From assembly GCA_000320545.1 (NCBI GenBank), contig ADNK01001892.1, positions 15,730 to 79,729 of the forward strand: DNA of 64,000 nucleotides. Reading direction: 5' to 3'. The notes beneath the pieces are model-generated. The model was not told the origin of the DNA and did not search any database. It saw nothing but the letters and a program-made list of their open reading frames with translations. Made by a program: the position numbers and the translations under genes. This DNA is from Bigelowiella natans CCMP2755. Lineage: Eukaryota > Protista > Cercozoa. Of this stretch, positions 6,715 through 63,130 are shown piece by piece. How positions within the stretch are numbered: the stretch's first letter is position 1; the number at the start of each line of letters is the position of its first letter.

Positions 6715-7530
6715 TGGCAGGTGTTTGATGATGATGAGCTGGGTAATCTTACAACTGGAGGCTCATGTGAGTGTCGCTCCCCTCAAAATGTCAAGTGTAA
6801 TTACATCGAGACAAGGTGCATCAGCATGGAAAGTCTCCACGCAGCTAGAATGCCAATTTTTCAAATCCAGTCAGTCCTCACTGAAGCTGGTTCGAGGCAG
6901 TGCGTTTCGTGCTTTGCAAATGTCATGCAACATTTTGGAAGTGCAGTCCTTCATCACGTTTGTTTGTTTGATCGCATTTTCTTTGGTTGCACGTTTTGGA
7001 AGTGTGGTCCACCTTCAAGTCACTTTCTTTTTTTGTTTCTTTGCTCTTGTCAGGGGAGGATGTGCACGCGTCAGCACGTCTGATGCGATGAGCCCTGCTT
7101 CGCGTTCATTCAAGGTCATCCGTCGAAGTGCCGTGGCCGACGGACGCGAAAGAAACCCTCAAGTTTTCTTGGTGTTTCAGTTGATTGAGGAGGACACGGG
7201 TGAGTCAGCGTGCTGCCTTCTCGTTGAGATTCGAGTTGCAGGCACGTTGCACGTCGCTCCGCTGCACCACTCCAGCACTGCAGCCAAATCAAAGCCAAGT
7301 TCAATGCTTCTGCGTGCAGCCTTGTGCTCCTTTCGACCGCGTCATTGGAATCACTGCTTGCTTTCTTTCTTTCTTTCATTCCAGCATGAACGTTGTGTGA
7401 GCAGCGCGTGTTGCATGATTCGTGTTTGCTCCTGAATGTTGAAAGTGATTTTGACTCATTGTTGCCACGTGTCCTGCAGAAAACACGACCATGCACAAAC
7501 CTCTGGAAAAATGCTGTGGCTCGGTGCGTT
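6715..7530 (+). pseudogene. Probable relic of an intron-containing gene inside island 1
   Basis: Exon-like blocks bounded by AG/GT: about 6720-6766, 7054-7199 (..FLVFQLIEEDT, gtgagt donor) and 7385-7523 (HDSCLLLNVESDFDSLLPRVLQKTRPCTNLWKNAVAR). The TA-free part has no Tyr codons. Confidence 0.35.
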
Positions 7531-8450
7531 TCGGCACGCCTTGTGGCTTGCCAGCTGCAAGTGCCAGTCTGGCGGCAGCAGTGTTGTGCGTGCTGGCACA
7601 CGCTGGCACGCCTGGACACAGCAGTTCATTGTGTGCATCGCATGCAGTCATCTCGACTTTCAGTTTTCGCATCGCGTGCAAAAAAATCTTGCGTGCGCAT
7701 GCACATGGGCTTGTGTGTGCATTTGGACGTGATCAACTTTGATGCCAGTTGTCGCACCTTCGGTTTGTGCATTCATCGCTTGCGTGGGAGTTGGCATGCT
7801 GTCAATGTCCTTGTTGATTGTCTGAACTTGCTCAGCCTGCATGGCAGCAGGCGCGGTGCGATGATGCGACGCGGCATTGAAACCATTCGCATGCAGAACG
7901 GCCGCAGCCGGCTGTTGTCCTTGAACTCTTCGTCAAGGCAAGCTGCGTGCTTCGGAATGGGTGACGCTGATCGGTCAGCGTGCCGCGGTGGTGGATCTGA
8001 GGTGTCAGAGGTCATCAATTCTTGTGAAGCATGCATGCGCATGCAAGTGCAGGCTAGCAAACTGTCACTATCAGGCCAACAGGGCACCGCGCATTCCCCA
8101 TGCGCGCAACGACTCTTGCGCTAAAAAATGGCCGAACAAGCTAGGGCAGGGCACGGTGAAATTTGCATGCACGGTTGCTTGAATGATGATGAGACGTCTA
8201 GATCGTCTCAATGAGCGCTCTCTGGAATTTGAGCCCGTTTTGGCTGACATTTGCAGCAACCACAGAACCACCACAAAGTAGCAGAAACTAGCAGCAAACC
8301 AGCAATGATTAACGATGTCTTAGATGCAGTAACTCTTTGCAATTATGATGAAGACAAGTAACCATCGACACATCATCAACAGAGTGGACATTGCACTTTG
8401 GAAATGTTCCCATCCAACCTGTAAGCCGATGTTGCATGAAGGTGGTAAAA
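6848..8450. repeat. TpA-depleted island 1 (degenerate repeat or duplicated DNA)
   Basis: No TA dinucleotide in 6848-8054; rich in TG/CA with CpG retained; contains a 255-bp segment repeated in inverted orientation at 19198-19453. Confidence 0.8.
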
Positions 8451-9971: not shown

Positions 9972-10755
9972 GGGAAGTAATTGCGACAGCAAATACCAAA
10001 AACGAAGGTCATTATCATCATGATCTTCATCATTGTTGTCAATGAACTAACCGTTGAAAGCTCCGAAACCACTTGCTCGTACACCTCCTACAAATGAAAA
10101 TAATGCATATCCATTTTATTATCATCATAATATTTCCTAATTACAAATCAAACAGCAGCACATCATGATTTAATTAATTTCAACTGACATCTTACTAATT
10201 AGTACAAATCAGCACCATACTACTACAACTACTACTACCAAATGGTAAAGATTGGATCAGCGGCACAATGGCAAAGTCATTAATGTTAGCCATTCCAGTC
10301 ACAATGCGTTTTGAGATACGCTCTGCTTTAGAATAGTCTTTTGAGAAGATAGAAGATCTAACAAGGAGGGCCATAGAGGAAAAGAAGGAGATAGTTAGAA
10401 AGAAGAAGTAAAAAGGCAAGATATCATTCAGAAAAGAGAAATTAAAGAGCTGTGATCTGTGTTGATTGAGAGAGGAGCCGTGTGCATTACATATCAGCAG
10501 CTTTGGAATGACTGACCATAATGTAGAATACGCATTTAATGCGAAACATTTCCATTATGTTGTAGTTGTTATCGGGGTTTGTTAAACAATCATGACTACA
10601 AACAGACAACAATTATTACTATTATTAATTGGTACGTGTATTATTACTATTATTATTATTATTATTATATACGCAGCAGTTAGTTGTTTAAGATGACCCT
10701 AAACCATATGGAGTAGAATTGCATAATTTCTCCAATTCGTCTTCGCTCTTCCATC

Positions 10756-17803: not shown

Positions 17804-18241
17804 GAAATGGTGGTGCTGCAGTGGGTGATTACATTTTCAAATCAATTGCTGAGAAAGACTAATTGGCGACATTTTGACTAGTTGAGTGCAGCACGCATTG
17901 GCATTCTCAATCATTCCCGTGCGTCCTCTCCTTGGACCACATCTAGCAGATGTCAACTTAAAATATGATTCATCCATTGATGCAATGATCTTCGCGTTTC
18001 ATTGTTCATCACCATGATCACTTCTAGACTTTCATGTCTAGGACTAGAGCAGATGTGCGCACATCTAGATGTAGATGCACTATAGCTCTATAGAGCGCAC
18101 GGTGTCTATCTGCATACATATGTGTGCCGACATATACATCGATAGAGTGGTTGAGCTTATGATTTCTGTATGGCGCTCGAACACCGAACTGCCAAATTTG
18201 GCACCGAATCTCATCGTTATAGCGTAGATTGTAGCATCGTA

Positions 18242-20300
18242 GGCAGCAGTCTGTGAAGTTGTTTCATTGATCGATGCATGGCATCGCAAGCGCAGCTAGG
18301 GTGCACGGCACGCACGTCATTGGTGCAATGCGAGATCGATTTCAAGCCTTGCATGACCAATCTAGCAATGCTCCAAGCGCTGTCCGCCAGCTGTGCACGT
18401 TCAGCGAACAAGATGTTGTTGATGTCGCCCATGCGCTCGCCTGCTGGCAATGAATGTCCATCTGGAACAAACTGTGAACACAGTGTGCATTGTGGCGCAC
18501 GCCAGCACGGCGCCACGATGCAGTTTGCCGCCCGACCACGACGAGCCCCCTGTTGGCCTGTGCTGGCCCGACAAGCTAGCAAGGCCGCATGCAAAAGTGC
18601 ACACGTGCAGCGTTGGACACGGCCAAGTGGCGCTCAGCGTGTCGCGACATGGCAAAGTGAAAAGCTCACTCACTTTGCGGAAGTCTCTCAGGAGTTTCGC
18701 GCATCGCGACATGGCTAGATGGCAGCGTGAAAAGCCATGTCGCGACATGGCAAAGTGAAAAGCCATGCGTCGTCGCACCTGCAACAACGATTCAGACACA
18801 ACTCATCAGAACTCAAAAGTCCAAGTGACACATTGAGATCAGAACTCAACTGCACAAGCAAGCAACCAAGCAACCAAGCACACTCAGAACTCAAACGACC
18901 AAGTGACATCAGAACTCAAACGTTCAAGTGACAAAGCAACTCAAGAACCAAGCAACAATGCAACTCAACGACTCATGCGGCTTCAGTTCTCAACACGAGA
19001 CCGCATTGCACCACGCCCAATGCTGCAACAATCGACAGCTGCACTCGATGCAGAACGAATCGGTTGCATGCGAGGGCGCACATTGCTGCAACAATCGACA
19101 GCCTGCACGTGACGCAGAACGAATCGGTTGCATGCAACAGTGCGTGTGCGTCTCAACTTCAACCCTGCGACACGCGTGCTTCTGCACACGCGCGCAGCAC
19201 CTCAGATCCATCACCGCGGCACGCTGACCGATCAGCGTCACCCATTCCGAAGCACGCAGCTTGCCTTGACGAAGAGTTCAAGGACAACAGCCCGGCTGCG
19301 GCCGTTCTGCATGCGAATGGTTTCAATGCCGCGTCGCATCATCGCACTGCGCCTGCTGCCATGCAGGCTGAGCAAGTTCAGACAATCAACAAGGACACTG
19401 ACAGCATGCCAACTCCCACGCAAGCGATGAATGCACAAACCGAAGGCGCGACAGCACGATGCATGTGATGATGTGCACAACGCATGTGACATGCACGTGT
19501 GCACGTGCGTGTGTCTGTTGTGTGATCGAACAAGGCGTTTCAATTGTGCAAATTGCACACTTGCACGATGCATGTGTGCACACATTCGATCATGCAAGAC
19601 ATCGATCCACCGCACATGCATGCTTTCACATTTTCGATGTTGTCGCACGCAAAAACTCGGTGATTTTCAAATGCATGCATGCATGAGCTTGGCTTGAACT
19701 TGACGCTCAGACGCCTGTCAGTCCACAGCTCAGACGAGTGCAGATGCAATGCGTGGTGGTGTGTGGACAACGCAACACTCCGGACACGTCACATTGCACC
19801 ATCCATGCAGCCATCCACACTGTGTGCCATTCAGCACAGCTAGCCATGCGTGCTGTGATTGTGATGGTGGCATGTGCCATCTTCATTTGACCGTGCGTGC
19901 TGCGCGCGCATGCAGGCGCGTTCCCCACCACTAGACCCTGACATCGATGGCTGAAACATCATGAACCAACAGATTCATGCAACGCATCAGCCCTGTAGCC
20001 GCTGCCATGCTGCACCACATGGTGCATTGCACAGCTACATGTGAGGATCACAATTGCGAACAAATTTAATTGATTGAGCGCGTCCGTCTCACCCTGACGG
20101 TGTTTGATTTGTCGATCCGAATTCACATTTGTCGCACACGCATGTGCAAGGTCACACATGTGCTCGCTATCGGTTAGCACATATTCAAGCATGAAATGTC
20201 CAAGCGCACTCAGCACTGCAGCCGGAGCGCACTCCACAACTTGTCACACCCATATCGCACGCGAAATTGCAACTCGCAATGAGCTTCCGATGGCGTCGCA
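18242..20300. mobile_element. TpA-depleted island 2; degenerate repetitive element of undetermined class
   Basis: Only six TA in 18242-19995, all in CTAG. Internal short direct repeats at 18640-18930 and 19020-19135. Shares 255 bp with island 1. No transposase or RT motif recognised. Confidence 0.6.
19198..19453 (-). repeat. Inverted dispersed copy of 7750-8004
   Basis: Manual alignment over about 255 bp shows 4 substitutions (all A/G) and one 1-bp indel, about 98% identity. Confidence 0.95.
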
Positions 20301-20845
20301 CAGCGTTGACATCTGGGTCTGGAATTGAATCATGTGCTCATTGGCGCAATGCAATAATGGAAATGTGGCAAACACACTGCTGTGTTTTAAGCGAGGCAAT
20401 CCTTTTTTAACTCTTCAGCAAAACCAAAAATCTCAACAAATTGTAGTGCACGACAAACAGTATATACAGAGAGACCCATCAACATGCATGTGGATCAAAG
20501 ATGGCGTACATTGCTGTGTCTCTATGGCATTTGTTTTATATGCAGTTTCGCACACGTGTGAGAATGCAGGACATGCGAGGCACTTTAGAACACTTGATCT
20601 CGAGTTCATTACAGATATAGAGACCCAATCACTTGATGCATACTTTGCAATATGTGCACAATATGGGGCTCTAGTTGACATCTGCAAAGTACGAAATGCA
20701 GTGTCTCGAGCTGAGAGCAGCGAGGGTTGACTGGACGAACCAGCACGATTTGAAAATTTGTGAAAAGGAACAAGCTGGCGCAGCGGCATGACTCGAGCTG
20801 ACTGAAATGAACCACACATTCGCCACAACCTTCGACTTCCTTGCT

Positions 20846-22700
20846 TCAGATTTTTCTTTGATCGGAAGAAAGCTGAGATGTCCAGCAGATTGTTTGATTC
20901 ACAGCAGCAATGTCAGAACAGCTGCGATTATTCCAAAGTTGATTCAGTTCCATGTCCTTCGGAATGTTATGACTCCTATTTGCAAGGCTACTGCCCCTTG
21001 AAGTTTTCTTACCAACAGAGGAGAAAATCTCGGGGGGGTCAGAGCTGCTACTTGCTATTTGTTTCTGGAGTTTCTTTAGCGTTGACTGAATTTGAGAGAT
21101 GTATTCTCGATTTGCTTCCGGACTGATGCCTTTGACCATGATACGTCCCACACGTTCGGTTTCATTTCCATTACTGCTTAGCCCTTTTTTCTCGCGACTC
21201 CGTTCTTCCTTATCTTCTTTTGGCGCACAAACCACACGGTGAGAACAATAATAATAATAGGAGAAGCATCCTCAAACCGCTGACAATTCCTCCAATGAGA
21301 CCAAAAACAATGTAACCAAGATAGAAAGTCCATCTCTTCGCTGCGTTTCAAAGTAGGTGCATTGTAAGGATTACAGGCGGAAAAGTAGTCCTCAAACGAC
21401 GTGTTGGAATCTGTTTTCATGATGCATCATCCATCTTTGAGCCCCGAATAAATGTCTGTAAATTGGGTTGACTCATCTTTCGACGAAATGAATTATTATC
21501 AGCAAATGTCTGTAAATTGGGTTGACTCATCTTTCGACGAAATGAATTATTATCAGCAAATGTCTGTAAATTGGGTTGACTCATCTTTCGACGAAATGAA
21601 TTATTATCAGCAAATGTCTGTAAATTGGGTTGACTCATCTTTCGACGAAATGAATTATTATCAGCAAATGTCTGTAAATTGGGTTGACTCATCTTTCGAC
21701 GAAATGAATTATTATCAGCAAATGTCTGTAAATTGGGTTGACTCATCTTTCGACGAAATGAATTATTATCAGCATATCCCATCCAATTCCAGAAAGAAGC
21801 TTCCGAAATTAGTGCCAGTGTTGGAAAATTATAAAGTATTTGCAGCGTGGAACAGTAGTAAGATCAGAATACTCAAGCCTAGAGAGTTCTAGGCCCACTC
21901 GAATCTAAGTATTGCTCACATGAATATTGCATCGTAGTCCTCCTGACATGTTCTGTTCCTAAAATGATGAAAGTAACACTTCATATTTGCATCGGTAGCC
22001 AGGCCTGGGGGCCTCCAATCATTTTGCGTACAGCTGAAGAGGAAATCAAGTGTAGGATCATAAAAGTAATCTCGATAGGGGAAAAACCGTAAAATTAGGC
22101 AATCCGATGACGAATGAGTGTTTAGCCCAAGAGTCTTCATAAGATGTTGGGACTGCTTGCACGTCGATAGTATAATTGACTCGTTCATCCATTTTGGCAA
22201 ATACCACACCCATGTCATAAACGAGCTGAATAACGAGCTGAATATCGATTTCTATTCCCGTTTCTAAATCGTTAGCCTTTCCCAGCATCATAATCCTCCT
22301 TTGTAAGTTTGACCTGCTTTGCAACACAAGTTCACTACTATCGTATAGATATATAGACCCCTAAGAACCGAGCGAAAGGAGGTTTCATCATCCCATCTAT
22401 TTGAGATTATTTTTGACTTGACTATCGGCCAACCCATCAGTATTTCCTCACAAATTAAGTCTTCGGTAAAATTCATAGCCTCCAATTTGGACTTGTCAAT
22501 AACTGTTGAGGATTCTTTCCAGAATCAAAGAGCGAACCGACTTTAGAAATCCCAGGTTGGCGGACGACGATCGTGAAGGCGACCATTTTAAGAGCATAAT
22601 AAACGGCTTAGCCGACGACAATAACGATTGCAAGGAAACTAAACACGATCGTCATTATCGATCCATGTCGGACATTAGAGATTTTTTCGCTCCTTGATTT
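20846..22700 (-). pseudogene. Interrupted ORF fragments; possible pseudogene of a type II membrane protein
   Basis: Protein-like fragments in shifting frames: MCFPKSR..IMTIVFSFLAIVIVVG*, LEAMNFTEDLICEEILMGW, FWNWMGYADNNS, DFLSWLHCFWSHW. In-frame stops are present and I found no consistent GT-AG structure. Confidence 0.3.
21450..21773. repeat. Perfect tandem repeat, 6 x 54 bp
   Basis: Unit AAATGTCTGTAAATTGGGTTGACTCATCTTTCGACGAAATGAATTATTATCAGC starts at 21450, 21504, 21558, 21612, 21666 and 21720. Confidence 0.97.
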
Positions 22701-22897: not shown

Positions 22898-23109
22898 TTT
22901 AAATTGTTGTCGCAGGTACAAAATCCCTCTGGTTTTTGCGAAAGTTGTTCCCCATTGTTGTCGCAGGAACGATATCCCTTATGTTTTTTGCGGAAGTTGA
23001 TCCCTATTGTTATCGCAGGAACGATATCCCTTATGTTTTTTGCGGAAGTTGATCCCTATTGTTGTCGCAGGAACGATATCCCTTATGTTTTTTGCGGAAG
23101 TTGATCCCT
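22898..23109. repeat. Minisatellite, about 4 x 52 bp, upstream of the dolichol kinase start
   Basis: Unit CCCTATTGTTGTCGCAGGAACGATATCCCTTATGTTTTTTGCGGAAGTTGAT at 22950, 23002 and 23054, plus a diverged copy at about 22898. Confidence 0.93.
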
Positions 23110-23275
23110 TTTTTCATTCTTCATCACCTGTGAGTCATCAGACATCGGCAATGTTTCACTGAGATGAAAGGGGGGCGGGGGTGAAGGAAAGAATGAACGA
23201 AATGTCCCCAATCAGCTAGCAACAGTAGTTGTAAAAGGGGGAGGTTAAGGTAGAAGAGCCTTGTGTTCGTATCAA

Positions 23276-36634: not shown

Positions 36635-39208
36635 TCTTCATAGAACGATGAGAGCATTTAGAAGCAAACAATGAGACTACTAATACACACAAGGTTGATT
36701 TAGTTGATCTTACTTATTGCTGTAGCACATTTGGGTGTATGGTGGTAGTGATAACCGACTCAGCTGTTCATTCAATGGTAATTGTGATGGTGGCGGTGAA
36801 GGTTATGGGGGGGAAAAGAACAATGTAGATAATCAAACGATGATACTAATAGAGACATATAATATTTCTCTTAAGGTAAGTTTGAGGCTCAACAACTAGC
36901 AAGCTTTATCGATTGCACTTAATTAAAGTAAAGATGTAGGAAGAATGCAAAGGTAACCAATAATATTTGTTATTGATAGGGATAATACAGCACGTAGTAG
37001 TACCGAATTAGCTGATATAAACTTTGTAGGCGCCCAGTACTTGAAGATGAATGTTTCATTTTTTGCTAGCTTACGACTCACATATGTTTCCTTATTTATT
37101 TTACCATTATAGGATAGAAAAGGAGGAGGAGAAAAAATAGGAAGAAGAGGTGGGGGAAGGGAAACAAACAACAAATATGAGTATCATGAATTGTTCCCGG
37201 CTGCTTCAGGATATGATGATAACTGTTACTACTACTACTACGCACTCATGGCACAGCAGGGTCTCCGATGCTTCTTCATGTTTGCTACTTCTCACAAGTG
37301 TTTTGTTGTTAGTCACAATTAGCATAGAATGCTGGTGCTATATCATCAACACCGTCGTCTTAACTATCATCACAATCATGATCATCATCATGACACAAAG
37401 CCGAACTATCATTATTAAATTCATCGTCATCATCATCATAGTACCAAGCCAGAGATTCCCCAGTAGGAAACCGTTAAGTTCAGTCCTCGATTTACGATAA
37501 CCTTGATGATGATGATAATCAATAAGATACAACATCAACAGTGAAAAGGAAGAAGAAGAAGAAGTAGAAAAAGAAGAAAAAGAAGTTCTTGTGCGAATAA
37601 TAAATCAGACTGCTCACTACTCCATCGATAGATAGTCCTTTATCGGTACTTTGTTGTTTAATTATTATCTCCGTTACTATTACCACTACTATTATTACTA
37701 CTACTACCACTACCCAATAATACTACTACTACCTGATGCAACTGCCCTTTGTCATACGTCTCAATCTCGGCCTACAACAACATACAAACAATCATAATAA
37801 TAGAAGCTTGGCGAGGACATAACGAGAATAGATCAAAGAACAACTTAAGAATTTCTTGTTCTTGTTCTTCTCTTCTTTATCTATAGTAATAGTATAAGGA
37901 AGATAATCCTCATGTTAATCAATATCTTTCAACAAATAATATCAATAATCCTCATGTTAATCAATATCTTTCAACAAATAATATCAATAATCCTCATGTT
38001 AATCAATATCTTTCAACAAATAATATCAAACGGAAACCTTGATATCGGCACAGTTACTTCCTGATCCTAATGGATTGAATGTGTTGTAGAAGTAAAGAAT
38101 GAGGATGTTATCACCACACAAACTAAAAGACCAACACAGTAATAGTAGTAGTAGTAGTATCAATGCACTAATGATTCATTATAATGGGTAGAGATAATAA
38201 CAATATTCTACACACGGATGATGATTATGCTTTGTGTGATATTATCTTCTGCTGTTGTACCCTAATCGTGTTTCATCATATTGTTACTATTGTTACTAGC
38301 ATTCGTGTATGCTTGTCGATGTTAGTACTACTAGTACTTCAATTACCATCTACGTTCCACGAGTTGCACCAAGGCGGGGTGAATCGATATCTTCATCAAC
38401 ATTGACACATAATAAGCAGCAGGGTATAATAAGCACAGCAATTACACTATCATCATCATTAAGGACTATTAGTCATCCTACTACTACTGCTTCAGCATCA
38501 TCAACATCATCATCATCATCATCATCATCTTCATCATCATGATCACTACCACCACCTCTACCACCCCATATCCACCTAATAGGAACTCTTACCTTTCAGA
38601 AAGTCCGTGAACAATATCGGTGTCATTTTGGGTAGCGTACAGCTGAATTACCTAGCTCAAGCACACAACAAGCAGACAGTAGGGATATGTTGTGATATCA
38701 TCAAAAACAGTCGGATGAATGTACAGCATCATCATTATGATCACCAACACCATAATCTATATGATTTAAGCTATTATTACTACTACTGCAACCTACATGG
38801 ATTGCTGATTCAACTTATGTATTTTAATTTACTTCAATTGAATACTTTGATGATTAGTGATAGCTTCTAATGCTACTACTACTTCTACAACTACTGTTAC
38901 TAATACTATTATACCTCAGGGATTTGTAAGCTCCTCCAAAAGTCACTGCTCTCCGCAACGAAGCTAGCATAATCCGCGTTCCTGGTAATAATACATAGAA
39001 ATACTGTAAATGTACTCTTTCAAAAGAGTAAGCTTCTCTTTTAAAATTTTCATTTTATTTAAGGTTCAAATACTGGTTTACATCTCATTTGACTATTGTA
39101 CTTCCAAACAGTTGCTAGGTTATACAATAATCAATTTTGTCAGCTCTATAATTCTTACTATCATCCCAATTCAGTGCGTAAGCAGCATATCCGCTACTAC
39201 TATGTATG

Positions 39209-43249: not shown

Positions 43250-44045
43250 GTGGAAAAACTTTTTATGGCGCATGCAACAACATTCCGAGGTGTGCCATGA
43301 GATCACAAAAGTAGTTCAAACACCTGTCTTCCACCAATGTGGTGTCATCAGAGGTTTGTGTCTTTTTGAAAGGCAGTGAAAAATTTCGAGTCCTTGTGAG
43401 TGATTCAATTCCCAGTGGGCAAATGATTGATGAGTTTGCAATCATGTCATCATCGAAATATCATTGCCTCATTTGGATTGCACCCTAATGTCCACAGTAC
43501 AAGATGTTGAGCTAGCTCTCGGCGCAAACTTGCTGCATCTGGAGGTGTGTGCATCAGCGCAACAAACTGTGGAGTGCATGAGCTAATGGACATCTGATCC
43601 ATGATGACTGACCGCAACGTAGCAATGCAAGCGAGTGATGGGATGAATCGCAAGCATGCCTCGAACAACTCAGATCTGGACGTCTTCATCTGAGTTTGAT
43701 CCATGCTTCTAGCTAGCTAGCTAGCTAGCTCTGGAGCTAGGCTTCGCTAGTTCGATGTGGATGTGCGTTTGCAGACGTCGTACATGCCGTGCACGTGGTC
43801 AACACAAGAACAGTCCTGACAAATCACATGGCTAGACAGGCTAGCAGGCGCACAACCAACTAGCTAGCTAGCTGTTGGATGTCCAGCTAGCCAGGTGCAG
43901 CTGTGGACACCGCCTCTGAACCGGAACATGGCCAGTCAACGTGGACGCTGCACGCGTTGCAGCAATTTGTGTTCATTGAGTCCATTGCAATCAAATTGCC
44001 ATGGGTCTCCATTGTTGCTCGTGCCACTGTGTTGCCATGCATGAA

Positions 44046-44079
<34 letters not shown>

Positions 44080-44600
44080 GATGTGATCGCCAGCTCCAGC
44101 TTGTCGGCTTGACTGGAAGAGGCCAGCAGTGATTGCAGGAGCAGGCACACCAGCACAACTTGTCAGCTCTGAGCTAGCTGACTGGACGAGCGCCACACAA
44201 TTCACTTCACAGCTCTCGTGATCTGTTGACAGGCTCGTCTCTTGGTTCGTTTGGCCAAGAGCTGTGTGCCAGCGCTCACGTTGCCCACAAGGATGCAATG
44301 CTGCGCTCAGGTCAGCAACCACGCGTCTGCTTCTGGCTGCACTGCTGAACTGGTGCAAGCAGCGTCGCTGTCAAGAAAGTGGCACACACACACACACCAA
44401 CGCCCAGAACGGCAGCGCAGGCTGGCAGGTGTTGTCTGCATGGCTGCCAGGCTGGCTGGCTAGCTGTGTGGCTCTGGAGCTGGCCTTGCCCAGGTGCTGA
44501 CAAAGCAAGAGTTCAAAGATTCAAGTTTTGTGTTCATTTCTACGATGAAAATGGTCGCGTGAAATGAGATTGTCGCAGGGCAAAAATGCAGGAGAAAGAG
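43250..44600. repeat. TpA-depleted island 3
   Basis: All eight TA in 43783-44540 lie in CTAG; (CTAG)n runs at about 43717-43750 and 43860-43871; partial depletion on the left flank. Confidence 0.8.
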
Positions 44601-44900
44601 TTTAGTTTGTGCCTTCGTCCTGCGTGTAGCACATCTCATTTTGTCACAATCACAATTGAAAAGGGGGTTCGCATTTTGATGTCGTTGCTCTGAAATGGCA
44701 TCCTCTCCTGTACACTAGAAAGTACTTCCAACCAGGGAAAAAAGTCACAGCGGTGTCATCCTTTCCCCCCTGATGTGAGATGCGATCCAATTAAATGATG
44801 TAGGAGCATTGGGCATAACACAACGAATACAAAAATTTGCAGACTGTGTAAGTTGTCAATGAACAATAACGATACAATTTTTTCATTTTGTAGTTTCTTA

Positions 44901-45905
44901 ATGGGCAATAAAATCCTAAAAAAGACGGACTTTGATGGTAGATACTCTACTCATGAAGTCCTTGGAAGAGGTTCGTTTGCTACTGTAAAGCGGGCAGTGC
45001 GAAAGAAGGACAAAAAAGAATTGGCTGTAAAAATCATAAAGAAAACGAAGCTAAAACAAGAAGAACTTAAGATTGTCCACGATGAGGTGAAGATAATGAA
45101 TAGAATTTATCATCCTAATTGTGTAAAATTAGAAGAAATATTCGAGACTAACAAAAAGCTTTACCTCGTCATGGAGATTCTGAGTGGCGGAGAGCTCTTC
45201 GATCGCATTGTTGCTAAGGGCAGTTTTTCCGAAAAGGAAGCCTCCGGAGTCACCAAAGCTGTAGCTTTAGCATTGAAATACCTACATAACATTGGAGTAG
45301 TTCACAGGGACTTGAAACCTGAAAATCTCATATACGCCAACCATAGAAATGACTCCCAGATTAAAATTACGGATTTTGGATTGGCAAAGTTGAAGCCAAA
45401 TGGATCCTCTATGAACACGGCATGCGGAACGCCTGGATACGTTGCACCAGAGGTCTTACGAAAACAAAAATACACTGAAGCTGTTGATGTGTGGAGTCTA
45501 GGTGTCATTCTCTATATTTTATTGTGTGGATTTCCGCCCTTCTATCACGAAAATACCGGTGCCTTGTACAAGCAAATAAAGTCTGGTGACTACGATTTTC
45601 CGGATCCATATTGGAAAGATATCACTGATTCTGCGAAAGATTTGATAAAAAAAATGCTGACTGTGGATCCAAAATCACGAATCACAATTCAAAACGTACT
45701 AGCTCATCCCTGGATCAGTGGAGATGCTGCTTCAACAAGGCGTTTAGGAGCAGAGCACTCAATACAACTAAGAAAGCTCCAAGCCCGGCGAACCCTTCGT
45801 AGAGTCGTTCAGCATGTGATTGCCGTCAACATTTTCTCAAAATGCCTTGAGAACTCAACAAGTGAATCATCTTCTTCAAAGGACAAAATAATGGATGAAA
45901 GTTAA
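44901..45905 (+). CDS. CAMK1: Ca2+/calmodulin-dependent protein kinase I-like Ser/Thr kinase; intron-free CDS
   Basis: GRGSFATV, AVK, HRDLKPEN, DFG and GTPGYVAPE motifs, plus a C-terminal CaM-binding-like helix (RKLQARRTLRRVVQHVIAV). Likely start is MGNK at 44901; a possible 5'UTR intron lies at 44848-44893. Confidence 0.95.
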   Translation: MGNKILKKTDFDGRYSTHEVLGRGSFATVKRAVRKKDKKELAVKIIKKTKLKQEELKIVHDEVKIMNRIYHPNCVKLEEIFETNKKLYLVMEILSGGELFDRIVAKGSFSEKEASGVTKAVALALKYLHNIGVVHRDLKPENLIYANHRNDSQIKITDFGLAKLKPNGSSMNTACGTPGYVAPEVLRKQKYTEAVDVWSLGVILYILLCGFPPFYHENTGALYKQIKSGDYDFPDPYWKDITDSAKDLIKKMLTVDPKSRITIQNVLAHPWISGDAASTRRLGAEHSIQLRKLQARRTLRRVVQHVIAVNIFSKCLENSTSESSSSKDKIMDES

Positions 45906-45936
45906 CTAAACAAAATAATGGATGAAAGTTAACTAA
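45883..45936 (+). repeat. 27-bp tandem duplication spanning the kinase stop codon
   Basis: ACAAAATAATGGATGAAAGTTAACTAA occurs twice, at 45883 and 45910. Confidence 0.95.
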
Positions 45937-46249
45937 ATAGAATGATGATTAGCTTTGTAAGGAATATGGTCAATTGGACATGCAGTCAACTTAAATTGTG
46001 TCGACATTTCAAAAAAGGTCATTCCAGAAGCTCTATTTTTCAGGATGAGTACGACTCTATTGGTGGAAAAATTGCTACTAATTTTTCAATTAATCTTTCT
46101 TTTGCATGCTTTGCAAGATGAAGGTCCTGCTTCGAAGAAAGGTTTTGAGTCACATATTTTGAACGCACTGGTCTTGAGCATGCAACAACATCAAGAACAT
46201 CATCGACCTAGCAACCAATGCACTGAAAGCACTAGTGCAATCCTTGGCG

Positions 46250-46950
46250 CAACTATCTTGTTCCGAAAACGTGCCAGCAGGGCCTTCAGGTCCCTGGCTT
46301 GAGTGAAGTCCTTTTCTGTCCAATGAAGGCATGATAGCATGTGCTAGTGTGTGAATCAACCAGGCCACATTTGCCTCAAATTTCACGTGCAGCACAAAGC
46401 AGCGCGCATTTGAACAGAACATGCTAGCATGTCTAGATGTGTGCGTGATGACTCACTTGCTAGCTTGCTCTAGTGCTAGCTTGGTGCATCTAACTAGCTA
46501 GGCATGTGAGGACATGAAAAGCACACCTGTCTAGCTGTGCCTACTTTGTTGTGCTTGTCAACTACAGACATGCACATGTGTTCTTGCGCGCACACGCTAG
46601 CACGCGCCAGCTAGCTAGCTAGCCAGAGCCCTCAGGTCCCTATCACATCACTTGAACACACGCATGTGCACGTGGCAATCAATCTAGCAATGTCCGCTAG
46701 TCCGCATCAACCATCAACGTCTAGAACGTGCTAACAGCGTGCATGCAGAGCGTTTGCTAGTTTGGCAAGCCTGCACAATCTAGCAATGTGGACGGTGCCT
46801 TTGTAGCTAGGTAGACACTCATCGCCCAACTGACACTTTGAATTCAACACATGCTAGCATGCTTATTTTGTCACAAAGCAGTTCGTTGTGTTCAAAATGC
46901 TTTTGTCGCACAAACTTACGTGGAAGTACATGGAGATTGCTAACACCAAA
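46250..46950. repeat. TpA-depleted, CTAG-rich island 4
   Basis: In about 46420-46860 the TA dinucleotides I saw are in CTAG, CTA[ACT] or [AGT]TAG contexts. Confidence 0.7.
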
Positions 46951-55854: not shown

Positions 55855-58800
55855 CCTCTCGACTCGACGATGTTCCTCCTCCTTATCGCATACTACACCA
55901 AGTATTTACTCTAGACACCATTACTATGAATATATGCTGCTGCTACTGCTACTACTACAGAGTGCTGCTTCTTCTACTACCTTTCTCAGGATTTTCATCA
56001 ACTCAACCGCGATCACAAAGCGACGCTTGCCTCTGCTGCTGCTCGTTACGTCATTTGTTCCCTTTTCGTCGCTATTGCCATTCTTCTGCTTTTATAGATA
56101 AAATAAGGAAGGAAGAGAGAAGTGTAAAACCATCAGGATTAATCCTCGTCGTCATTGTTCAAACAACAGTCTCATCTTATTATCAGAATCAATCCATAAA
56201 TACAATTCTTCTTGGCATCTGCTTTCATTTGATACTACTTACATTGTCATGTTCTTCTTCCTTGGTAATGACTTGGCTGTTGTTTTCATGATGATGCCCA
56301 TAATTTGGAGAATAATATCCGTATTCAGGCTCTATTGTGAAAATACTCACTTCGCCCTTTCACATACAGACACCGAACAAAGGGGGGGGGGGGGGGGGGG
56401 GGGGGGAAGAAGGGGAGAGGAAGCATGCATTAGTAAATAAAATTATCAAGCAAAATACACATAAAAATCCACCAAATGGCTTCCAACAGGCAAACAGTAT
56501 TAGGTTCTCATGCTGTAGTAGTAGTTGTAGTAGTTGTTGTAGTAGTTGTTGTTGATGTTAAATATGTAAGGAGTCATAGGAGTTGTTGGCCAATAAAGTG
56601 GATCATCACTGAGAAAGAGTGATACAACACATCTACTACGGATGGAAACTTACTTCTTCCATTGTTAGTAGCCCGATTTCCAATCCTTCGCAGCTCTATA
56701 AAGATAAAAGAGAACAACAAGAAGAAGAACAGACAATAGACAAAGAAGAAGGGGGATGAAACTATTTGTTGTACTATGTTTCCAGATTTATTATTTGTAG
56801 TGAGTGGTAGGTAGCACCGACAGATGTTGGCCATAGAGTGTTTATTATCATCATCATTCCTATAAGCATATCCTTTCAGCAGTAGTTTCTTCAACTAATA
56901 CTATATCTATGCATCTATTTGATAATAGTAAGTAGAAACTACAAGAATCGATCTTATTCCCAGAGGTATTGTTAGGCTTTGGAAGTCAGTATATCTTCCT
57001 CTTGCACCTTAACAGAAGAAGAGAAGAATAATTGTATCGCATCAATTTTGATACAACTCTCCAACAAGCAGCAGCTCCTCTATTCCCTCCTCCTCCTAAC
57101 CGTAGATTTGGCTATTATAACTCACTGAAGTAGGGATCTCCATCTTCAAATCTTGCTTCAAGTGCCACAACGACAGAGTCGCCTTTCTGAAGGTCGTTTT
57201 CATCAAGTAGTTGTTTGGATATTATGATCAGCATCATCATCACTAGTACGATACCATCTTTAGTAGTAGTACTAGTAGTAGTAGTAGTAGTTGTAGTAGT
57301 AGTGGCAGTAGTATATTTAGTAAGGCTGCTGATCCTGGGGGGGGGGGGGGGGGGGGAGGTTATGACGTATGGAAGAGTCTCCAGGAAGATATACACAGCA
57401 ATGAGGATATATGAATGGGTGGGTAAGAAAATATGAGAAGATGATTACTTCACTCCCAAGCCGCCGCCACAAAAGATAGATTGATTATTCTGCAATCATT
57501 TATCAAATATTCCTCTTCTTGTTCTTCTTCTCGTTCCTACTCGTAGTACTATTACTACGTCTACAACAACTACCTTTGCGAATTCAAAGTTGCCAAGACC
57601 CCTTCGCTTTTGGATTTTTAAGACCCCTGAAGAGAAGTGAAGAGAGAAGGAAGAATATATGTTAATGGCCTCGTGCTAAGAACAGCATTTGTGGTGGTGG
57701 TAGTGGTGGTGGTGGGGATGGTGGGGATGGTGGGGATGGTGATGATAATGATGATAATGATAACAATCTTGTTGTTGTTGTTGTGATTGCAGTGGATCAT
57801 ATCACTTGTGCGGCGGTGTAGTGACAGTAGTAGTCGTCAACATATACATATCCTGTGCGGTGTAGTGACAGTAGCATCGTACAACACAGATACATACATA
57901 CATACATATTTACATACATACCCCGATCGGATGTCAGGTAATACGACCTCAGGAGATCCTCTTGCGTTATCATAAAATACTTATCTTCAAGCCTGAACAA
58001 CAACAACAACAACAACAAAAACAAGAAGAAGAAAAATAAGAAGAGAAAGAAGAAGAGATGGGCAAACCGTTGTGGATCATGTAACATAATCGTCCTCTTC
58101 ATAGTCATCATAAGAACGACTATCATACCGAGTACGATCATAATTGCTGGGTAGTACCATCAATATAAAACTAGCACTGAAAGGGAGGGCTGTGTGCGAA
58201 ATTTGCTGGTAGTAAAGAGACGTACGTTTGTTGCTAATCGTTGAAAATTATTCAATGTACATTCAAATTATTATTACCTCGATTTTGCTCGATTTTTTGC
58301 TGCTAGTTCTGCAGCCTATGGAAGAATGTTGCAAAACAAAAATAATAGAGTAAGAACTATAGAAGAATGTTGCAAAACAAAAATAATAGAGTAGGAACTA
58401 TGGAAGAATGGTGCAAAATAAAAATAATAGAGTAGGAACCATGGAAGAATGGTGCAAAACAAAAATAATAGAGAAGGAACTACTAGTGAGCTATCAGTAC
58501 CAACAACGAATCTTGAGAGTAATAGTTGAACGTGGTCATTGTATAAAATAGAGATTGTCGTAACGGCAAACGACACGCAACACCACCCACCTTGATAGTC
58601 GTTCTGTCTACCCGTTTGTCAGGAGGATCTCTGATTTCCTATGTGTCAGTAGTAGGGAAAAAAGAAAGAAGACAGACAGACAGTGACAACATACGGCTGA
58701 TGCGGAAGAATATATGTTAATGATAATACGGCTACAATTGTATGCTATCTTGTCTTATTCCCTCCTCCTTCTCTCTCCTTCTCTGGTTTGGAAACAGCAC

Positions 58801-60459: not shown

Positions 60460-61901
60460 ATGTTGCGGTACCTTCCTCCTCCCCTCCCACTTCCTCAGCT
60501 AACAGACTGTGTGTTGTGTTATTAGATCCGTCATTCAACGTTTTTCTCGCCGTAATCTCACCGGAATTACACGCTCTATGTCGTCAAAGCGTGCGATCGG
60601 TGACGATGAATGCTTTGTTATCACTGGCGGTGGATCCGGTATTGGACAAGCCGCTTCCATGGACCTCCTTCGCCGTGGAGTCACTGTAAAGCAACAGATG
60701 CATTTATTCATCGATGTAATTTTTCTTGCCTGAATAACTCTTACGGGTGGTTTTTTTCGTAGCTTGTTGTGATGGGACCAATCCAGAAAGAACTCGACGA
60801 CACCATGGCTCTCGCAAAGAGCGAGGACGTGAAGGTGATTCAAATCCGGAATGACAAATAAATCTTCCTCTTCCTGATGAAAATGTAAAAAATTATAGGG
60901 AGAAATGATTCCAGTTCTTGCAGATATCCGCGAGGATTCTGGGCGAAAAGCTGTAGCTGACGCAGTGAAGTCCACCGGAAAGGATCTTCGTGTTCTTATC
61001 CACAATGCTGGTGTAAATACCCCTTGCAAGAAGATGATGGATCTTTCTCCAGCTGAATGGGATCGGGTAACATAGCCACTATGCTATTTCGTTCTCCTAC
61101 TTCCTCATTTTGCACTTGTCTCATATTTATTTTTTCGTCCTCTCTGTGTCGATCATAGGTTATGAACATCAACATGAACGGTCCTCTCTACCTCACTCAA
61201 GAGCTATACCCACTCTTTGGAAAGGCTGACACCGATAAGAACCGTATTCTCATGCTCTCTACAATTGCAAAGGCTTGTACGGGTCTACCAAAGTAAGCAG
61301 CATATTTAGCCAGTACTCTCCCACCACACCCCATAATCATGAGGATTATTATTTGTCATATCATACAATTAGCTACGGTCCTTACTGTGTTTCCAAGCTT
61401 GGAGCATACGGTATTGCACTGATGTTGAAGGAGGAACTTCCCGAGGGATCTACTCCAGTGTACACCTCCACTCTTGTGCCCGGAGAAGTGAACACAGAGA
61501 TGCAAAAACAGACAGCTTACAGCAGCTCCTCTGGATTCCCAGAGCATCTTGTCAAGCATTGGCGCATGCTTCATGAAACTAACCAGCTTCTTCCTCCTGC
61601 TGTTCCTGGAGCTTTCATCTCCTTTGTCACCTGCGATACGGTAAAATAATAATGATAATGATATTAGTATTTGAGACCAGCACCCTTTTGCCATTGAGTG
61701 GGGTGGGGTGTAGGGTTGGAATAGAGTGTGCTGCTGTTTGATTCTAATAATCTAAAATATGTTAATACACAGACTCCTCAAGAATATCTTGACAATGAGT
61801 GGTTCGTCTACGATGACTGGCACCATGAAAGGTGGGCTCAGGGATTTGCGGCTGATGGTGTGGAAATCAAGGAGCCTGTTGGCCTGTTCGGGGACCATTA
61901 G
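60460..61901 (+). CDS. Short-chain dehydrogenase/reductase (sepiapterin/benzil reductase-like) with probable mitochondrial presequence; 7 exons
   Basis: Exons 60460-60467, 60526-60685, 60763-60834, 60899-61066, 61159-61292, 61373-61640 and 61773-61901 join in phase. Motifs: TGGGSGIG, HNAG, YCVSK, PGEVNTEMQ. N-terminus MLRSVIQRFSRRNLTGITRS is Arg/Ser-rich with no acidic residues. Confidence 0.9.
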
Positions 61902-61949: not shown

Positions 61950-63130
61950 AGTGCACCAGTGTTGCATGGAAAATGTGATCTAAATTCCCTACATTGCATT
62001 TTCTCCCAGCGTCTTGAATCGAAAACGGAACCCTAATTGATTGCTCTGCTGGGCGCGCGCCTAGCGTAGGTGGCACGGCAAATGACATCGTTTGCCTGTG
62101 AGTGTTGTTGCGTTTGTGATTGTGCATGTAACACACCAGTGCACGCATAGCTAGCAGCTACCGGTCTAGCGGTGTGGTGTGCGTGCCCGCCACTCTGTTT
62201 GCGCTGTCATGCGTGTGCCTAGCTAGCTAGATGCATCTCTAGATCTAGAGATCAACACGCAGCATCAAAGCAGGCAACCGTGCAGATGTGTGTGCATGCA
62301 AATGCAAGGAATGATGCACGTCTAGCTAGCTAGCTTGCAAGCTAGCAAGCTCCAGAGCTAACAAGCTGCACGTGCGCCTACGTGGCATGCTAGCATGGCT
62401 AGTAGGTCTAGAGGTGCAGGCGCTTGCGATGTTTGTTGTTGCATTCTGCATTGCATTCTAGCATTGCTTGCATTCCGCTAGCCACATGTGGAACTTTGGC
62501 ACTGCCATGGACTGCATGCTAGCATGAACATGGATGCACGCACTGTGTCCAGATTTCAACATCACTTGAGCAAGCCAGCTAGCCGCCGCTAGCTCCAGAG
62601 CTTTTTCCACACCACAGTGTAGCCATGGTGCTATGTCGCTAGCTCCAGAGCACAATCAGTGTGCTGCGGGCGTAGCCACCGCAGCTAATCTAGAGCTTTG
62701 GCTAGCAGCGCTGCCGTAGCTGCATGAATGGCTAGCTCGCCAGTGCATGTGTGCACACGAATGCATGAAACATGCATGCTAGCCAGGCCTGCAGCTACGT
62801 GCATGCACATGTCCCGCATGCATGCATGTCTACAAATGTGCGCTGTCTGGACTGCTATGTGCTAGTACAGTCTGTCACCTAGTGCGACGTACAACATCAA
62901 TTCGCAAACAGACGACATGGAATCTGGAGAATTGATGAATTATGCGAAAGTGACATGCTAGCATGTAACAGCTACATGAGGATGACAATTGAACAAATTT
63001 AGTTCATTAATCACATCCATCTTGCAACTACCGTAACAATTAACAATTAAGATTTTGCATTTTATTAGAGTCAAATGACACAAATGAAAAGCGCGCTAGC
63101 AAAACTAGAAAAGCCATACGATGATCGATC
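61950..63130. repeat. TpA-depleted, CTAG-rich island 5
   Basis: Most TA in 62040-62460 are in CTAG, the rest almost all in CTA[AC] or [AG]TAG; recurrent motif GCTAGCTCCAGAGC. Confidence 0.75.

Follow-up and report, generated by a model that had tools for sequence, protein, structure and literature searches.

The 1.2-kb tract at positions 6848-8054 of the analysed window, a stretch of 64,000 nucleotides (64 kb) of Bigelowiella natans nuclear DNA, lacks the TpA dinucleotide altogether, and it is very probably intergenic DNA saturated by the region-specific TpA to TpG/CpA hypermutation of this species (A:T to G:C, on either strand). Such hypermutation has already been described for B. natans in a preprint (Mettrop et al., bioRxiv 10.64898/2026.01.13.699255; 2026, April 2026 version), so that the tract is not new in kind. 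The loss of TA, the matching gain of TG and CA and the sharp borders of the affected islands are seen in the window itself, the same mutation arises de novo in the lines of the preprint, and we infer that the tract was a target of the process described there. Among the kinds of genome editing in eukaryotes, an A:T to G:C hypermutation targeted at chromosomal DNA is rare; it is the mirror image of fungal RIP, and the credit for it belongs to the 2026 preprint. The additions made by the tract are incremental and testable, namely the completion of the process in short intergenic segments, borders within tens of bases of an expressed and untouched gene, and the escape of CTAG.

In the mutation-accumulation lines of B. 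natans studied by Mettrop et al., two regions, one from an integrated giant virus (scaffold 10) and the other from a virophage (scaffold 146), accounted for 231 of the 302 point mutations in the nuclear genome, and the mutation rate in them was ~1000x the background. The de novo mutations of these viral regions, found in some lines only, were with few exceptions A>G or T>C at TpA, nearly all the hits of Table S2 being at TAN/NTA. The main hypermutated target was single-copy, and the changes occurred in situ in vegetative culture. The authors liken the process to RIP and propose an ADAT2-like adenine deaminase, Bn78255, as a candidate on the grounds of sequence and structure prediction, including a residue that they link to DNA editing. 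[quoted passage not shown] With a Rho_TA of 0 and a Rho_CA+TG of 1.64, the tract satisfies the two thresholds. Only the 1-kb window from 7001 does so, the TA observed/expected ratios (o/e) of its neighbours being 0.71 and 0.73, and the tract would therefore count under the rule of the preprint as a flagged window, not as a cluster. Neither of the two regions in which hypermutation was seen is on scaffold 47, to which the present window evidently belongs, and the only scaffold 47 mutation among the matches listed is a G>T. In a saturated tract, on the other hand, no TA substrate is left for the process.

The TAs at 6846 and 8055 enclose a gap of 1209 bp with zero TA between them, the longest in a dinucleotide scan of the 64 kb. 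The tract itself (6848-8054, 1207 bp) has the base counts A 222, C 297, G 334 and T 354, from which 65 TAs would be expected, or 117 from the background TA density of the window (9.7% of dinucleotides), and the probability of a TA-free run of such length anywhere in the 64 kb is P ~1e-45. The enriched TG and CA have o/e values of 1.46 and 1.96, and that of CpG is 0.92-0.93. Thus the absence of TA, the enrichment of TG and CA and the plentiful CpG given in the preliminary description were all confirmed; the TA-rich flanks, on the contrary, turned out to be TA-normal, the left one being part-depleted of TA over ~300 bp and the right one returning to normal TA at 8310. Both TAs bounding the tract are CTAG, and over 8055-8309 TA occurs solely as CTAG, CTAH or DTAG. 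The TAs were classed by their neighbours as CTAG, half sites (CTAH or DTAG) and open sites (DTAH), and the islands were defined as runs without open sites. Since 8055-8309 holds no open site, the real extent of the affected island 1 is 6804-8309, with the TA-free core 6847-8055 between the two bounding CTAGs. This is a run of 1508 bp (P ~1e-34) in which no TA lacks both the 5' C and the 3' G, its TAs being CTAG (five times), CTAT, CTAA and GTAG, with no others. An assembly artefact, named earlier as an alternative, was rejected because the sequence is complex, the pattern is seen five times and a transcript matches the left part of island 4 base-for-base.

Altogether, five runs of 709-1849 bp without any open site were found within the 64-kb window, none of them assigned to a strand. 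Island 2 (18220-20066, core 18299-19931) is a 1849-bp run without DTAH; island 3 (43783-44710) ends just upstream of the mRNA start of a kinase gene; island 4 (46157-46863), which is CTAG-rich, overlaps the terminal 200 nt of the 3' UTR of the same gene; and island 5 (62131-62865) is likewise CTAG-rich. Outside the islands, the densities are 57.5/kb for open sites, 30.6/kb for half sites and ~2.3-2.5/kb for CTAG. Accordingly, ~69 open and ~37 half sites were expected in the core of island 1 (1207 bp), where 0 TA of any class is found, and in the core of island 2 (1633 bp) four TAs remain, each of them a CTAG. Summed over the five islands and assuming that they started at the background TA density, the excess of TG+CA is 439 against 420 missing TAs; the respective values for islands 1-5 are 86/117, 155/154, 81/79, 53/37 and 64/33. 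Every island has a surplus of TG as well as of CA (TG +63 and CA +23 in island 1, TG +53 and CA +102 in island 2), and since both products are over-represented, both strands were hit. A gain of TG+CA matching the loss of TA is what the conversion of TA to TG/CA predicts, and such a balance is hard to get from selection or from an unrelated foreign composition. Together with the de novo mutations of the preprint it upholds the regional A:T to G:C process at TpA suggested in the preliminary description, and the doubt expressed there as to whether such a process had been described in this lineage is settled by 10.64898/2026.01.13.699255, for the same species.

The islands are of two kinds, islands 1 and 2 having CpG o/e 0.92-0.99 and few CTAG, and islands 3-5 having CpG o/e 0.56-0.57 and many CTAG, so that they may differ in origin or age. 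The enrichment of CTAG is ~13-15-fold in islands 4 and 5 (31-34/kb versus 2.3/kb) and about fourfold in island 3, and the CTAG-rich stretches at 43700-43890, 46200-46860 and 62060-62900 contain it as (CTAG)n arrays, as GCTAGC and as the palindrome CATGCTAGCATG; an enrichment of this sort cannot be created by mutation in a TA context. A 74-bp match of 77% identity in the same orientation (20017-20089 and 62953-63022), located where islands 2 and 5 end on the right, may be a common element end or a boundary sequence. A (GAT/ATC)n array, TA-less by composition, is intact within island 3 at 44046-44080.

The transcription unit between islands 3 and 4 (44737-46360, plus strand; CDS 44901-45905) encodes a calmodulin-dependent kinase, the only long genuine ORF in the window, and provides an unmutated internal control. 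Its protein has 305/306 identity to the B. natans gene model jgi Bigna1 58021 (fgenesh1_pm.47) and 95% identity to a transcriptome protein of Bigelowiella longifila, and the window is B. natans nuclear DNA, evidently of scaffold 47. A B. natans MMETSP transcript aligns with 44737-46360 end to end, with no introns and with 1 mismatch in 1623 nt; B. natans genes average ~8 introns, and the intronless kinase stands out among them. The end of island 3 (44710) is 27 bp before the first transcript base, and island 4 starts within the final 200 nt of the 3' UTR. The CDS has a TA o/e of 0.64 versus 0.66 in the B. longifila orthologue and keeps 17 synonymous xTA codons and 18 codon-junction TAs. As an expressed gene adjoining the islands retains its synonymous TAs, the effect is regional and not genome-wide, and the process has sharp borders and spares the adjacent active gene.

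In the cores of islands 1 and 2 CTAG is the sole TA survivor, and in these two islands it is present at background density. Because the islands are themselves defined by the absence of open sites, an independent test was made on regions flagged by CA+TG enrichment alone, in which CTAG accounts for 91/441 TAs (21%) as against 119/4937 (2.4%) outside (odds ratio 10.5, p 6e-46). The contexts in Table S2 of Mettrop et al. are TAA 36, TAC 26, TAT 41 and TAG 4 for A>G, and TTA 38, GTA 32, ATA 40 and CTA 19 for T>C. The TAG/CTA class comprises ~10% of these hits versus ~19% of the strand-specific TA contexts in the window background and is roughly half as mutable, a rough value normalised by the contexts of this window and not by those of the viral regions. 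Half sites do mutate in Table S2, in agreement with their loss from the saturated cores. If G after A lowered the mutability only twofold, CTAG could not have kept its full density with 87 expected half sites gone; CTAG therefore looks protected as a four-base unit, or via strong synergy of both flanks on both strands, and its sparing is stronger than the trinucleotide data of the preprint would predict. If CTAG is immune, 0 of the ~22 de novo hits of the TAG/CTA class are expected in CTAG.

A four-base mass balance, tried for telling the protecting flank (+1 G versus -2 C), was discarded as confounded, since adjacent TAs mutate together. The product counts (CTGH 2.07x versus CCAH 1.30x) lean towards +1 G as the more protective flank and are not decisive. 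In Table S2, TAG A>G (4) and CTA T>C (19) are unequal though they represent one event on opposite strands, and the remaining three complementary pairs are balanced (41/40, 26/32 and 36/38).

With regard to the content of the islands, no Pfam domain and no reverse-transcriptase remnant were found in the 10 ORFs of islands 1 and 2, no homologue was returned by a protein homology search with the 243-aa ORF, and the Rfam and tRNA scans gave no match in the tract. The absence of viral or transposon signals has to be read in the light of saturating mutation, which would itself erase them, and the long ORFs of the tract exist because the TAA and TAG stops were lost. The sole gene signal detected in the vicinity is an aldehyde-dehydrogenase exon at 10198-10419 (minus strand), and the tract is therefore read as intergenic. 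This weak Pfam match to the C-terminal part of the enzyme, and another to a short-chain dehydrogenase at 61275-61646 (plus strand), suggest exons of intron-containing genes. Elsewhere in the window, a 54-bp unit is repeated ~8 times at 21396-21827; its central copies show 100% identity, and each of the two strands has open ORFs. Perfect tandem repeats also occur at 37903-38029 (42 bp x3), 58316-58520 (41 bp) and 22925-23117 (52 bp), and trinucleotide microsatellites (AGT/ACT, GAT/ATC, AAG) are very dense throughout, accompanied by arrays of (TA)n, (AC)n and (AG)n.

Within the 64 kb compared, the duplicated part of the tract is confined to a 256-bp segment and an old 61-bp match, the remainder being single-copy. 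The 256-bp segment (7750-8004, plus strand) has an inverted copy of 98% identity in island 2 at 19198-19453, with 4 A/G transitions and 1 indel, and the homology breaks off abruptly at both ends. Both copies are TA-free with identical TG/CA outcomes, which places the duplication after the erasure. The older match (6865-6925, plus strand; inverted at 20676-20736), collinear with the 256-bp pair, has a nucleotide identity of 45/61 (74%) and a purine/pyrimidine identity of 93%, and its 89.7 bits exceed those of 100/100 shuffles (shuffle maximum 60-72). Of its 16 differences 12 are transitions, one of them GTAC in the partner versus GTGC in the tract; with 1/12 transitions at a TA, the pair gives no polarity for the tract. 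When island 1 was aligned with inverted island 2 in a transition-tolerant way, nothing beyond the 256-bp block appeared. At 6926-7012 (plus strand), two degenerate tandem units, GAAGTGCAGTCC and GAAGTGTGGTCC, differ by CA versus TG at one dinucleotide, as would be expected, in this single case, if a single ancestral TA was converted separately in the two units. Of alternating pyrimidine/purine runs, counted as possible scrambled (TA)n arrays, the islands have one, too few for a test. No TA-bearing progenitor of the tract was found, nor a TA-bearing orthologue, and hence the polarity of change at this locus is deduced from the mass balance and from the direct observations of the preprint.

The preliminary description had also proposed that the process acts on repeated DNA, and in this it was not supported, most of the tract being single-copy in the window and the main target of the preprint being single-copy as well. 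The independent conversion of two copies would lead to a divergence of only ~10%, as estimated from the background TA density, and would be detectable by BLAST. In a BLAST-type comparison the islands do not match one another apart from the 256-bp block, so a dependence on repeats is not supported.

Several other explanations of the TA-free tract were considered. The chemistry might lie on thymine, with TET/JBP-type oxidation or hypermodification of T in TpA (5hmU, 5fU) mispairing with G and leading to T>C. Double-stranded outcomes cannot separate an A-directed from a T-directed reaction, the CTAG rule reads equally well as C before T blocking the reaction, and the deaminase is so far a predicted candidate; neither the tract nor the preprint, however, gives any sign of modified thymine in B. 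natans, and the ADAT2 homologue of the preprint has the residue linked to DNA editing. We regard this chemistry as rather unlikely and count it as a version of the same explanation, with no different phenomenon behind it. Another supposition is that the tract was never TA-normal, being either foreign DNA intrinsically free of TA or DNA under selection against TA (for instance by a TA-targeting transposon, a TA/UA-specific nuclease or stop codons). It could draw on the GC and CpG of the tract, which are above background, and on the position of island 3 next to the transcription start of a gene. It appears highly improbable, given that in each island the surplus of TG+CA equals the number of missing TAs, that selection would not exempt CTAG alone, that there is no coding or RNA-family signal in the tract, that just five islands per 64 kb of a gene-dense genome make no general promoter feature, and that the same mutation arises de novo in B. 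natans.

An ADAR-like A-to-I hyperediting of a transcript or dsRNA, the edited copy of which was then reverse-transcribed and integrated, has precedents in that edited retrocopies are known in animals. ADAR, moreover, prefers U before the edited A, a preference mentioned by Mettrop et al. Yet the editing of a single strand gives one product, at odds with the joint gains of TG and CA listed above for islands 1 and 2; UAG is the favoured triplet of ADAR and CTAG is nevertheless spared; the changes of the preprint arise in situ in a single-copy integrated region; and the 10 ORFs of islands 1 and 2 show no trace of a reverse transcriptase. This origin by way of RNA is the least probable of those considered.

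Under the hypermutation reading, the adenine following T would be deaminated by an ADAT2/TadA-like enzyme acting on DNA and read as G, with the targeting presumably set by chromatin or small RNA and not by sequence repetition. The C two bases before A and the G after A may jointly stop the enzyme on both strands, or CTAG may alternatively be protected as a unit. As a counterpoint, the GC of the tract is 52% versus ~46% predicted from TA conversion alone, and CpG is not depleted, so the ancestral composition may have differed from the background. A genome-defence role is hypothetical, because the tract is without transposon or viral homology. As a tentative extension, the machinery could reach beyond large integrated viruses, driving short (0.7-1.9 kb) intergenic segments of no recognisable foreign origin to complete TA loss and stopping tens of bases from active genes, with CTAG immune through a block by -2 C and +1 G or through a protective mark. 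The main text of 10.64898/2026.01.13.699255 makes no mention of CTAG, of context or of tetranucleotides, and none of CTAG immunity, of saturation in short islands below the threshold, or of an unmutated expressed kinase exactly between two islands. Because CTAG is exempt, any candidate enzyme can be put to a concrete test of its specificity, and the four-base rule, if true, would be a specific biochemical fingerprint for identifying it.

Among the known systems, fungal RIP is similar in being a regional, dinucleotide-specific transition hypermutation with sharp-edged islands that is thought to disable invading DNA. It runs, however, in the opposite direction, since it changes C:G to T:A, for the most part at CpA, and thereby generates TpA, whereas the tract has a TpA count of 0 with both CpA (1.96) and TpG (1.46) enriched; besides, RIP needs duplicated sequence and the sexual cycle, in contrast to the B. 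natans process, which operates in vegetative culture, and to the tract, mostly single-copy in the window. The APOBEC and ADAR enzymes share the deamination of foreign nucleic acid with a neighbour-base preference, ADAR favouring U before A. But APOBEC gives C>T, and ADAR acts on double-stranded RNA and favours UAG, unlike the tract, where CTAG is spared and both DNA strands were hit in place; the strand-coherent A>G clusters of the ADAR type are absent, TG and CA both being in excess per island and CTAG surviving. TadA and ADAT2-ADAT3 deaminate A34, always after U33, which matches the rule of T before A, and engineered TadA (in adenine base editors) edits DNA. In the islands only TA was lost, that is, T stands directly 5' of the mutated A, and the TadA-type deaminase put forward in the preliminary description as one candidate agrees with this. 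Natural ADAT substrates often have G after A34, which offers no obvious fit with the protection of TAG/CTAG. The preprint likewise names an ADAT2/TadA-type candidate and cites DNA editing by amphioxus ADAT2 (10.64898/2026.01.13.699255), the DNA activity of the B. natans homologue being a prediction. [quoted passage not shown]
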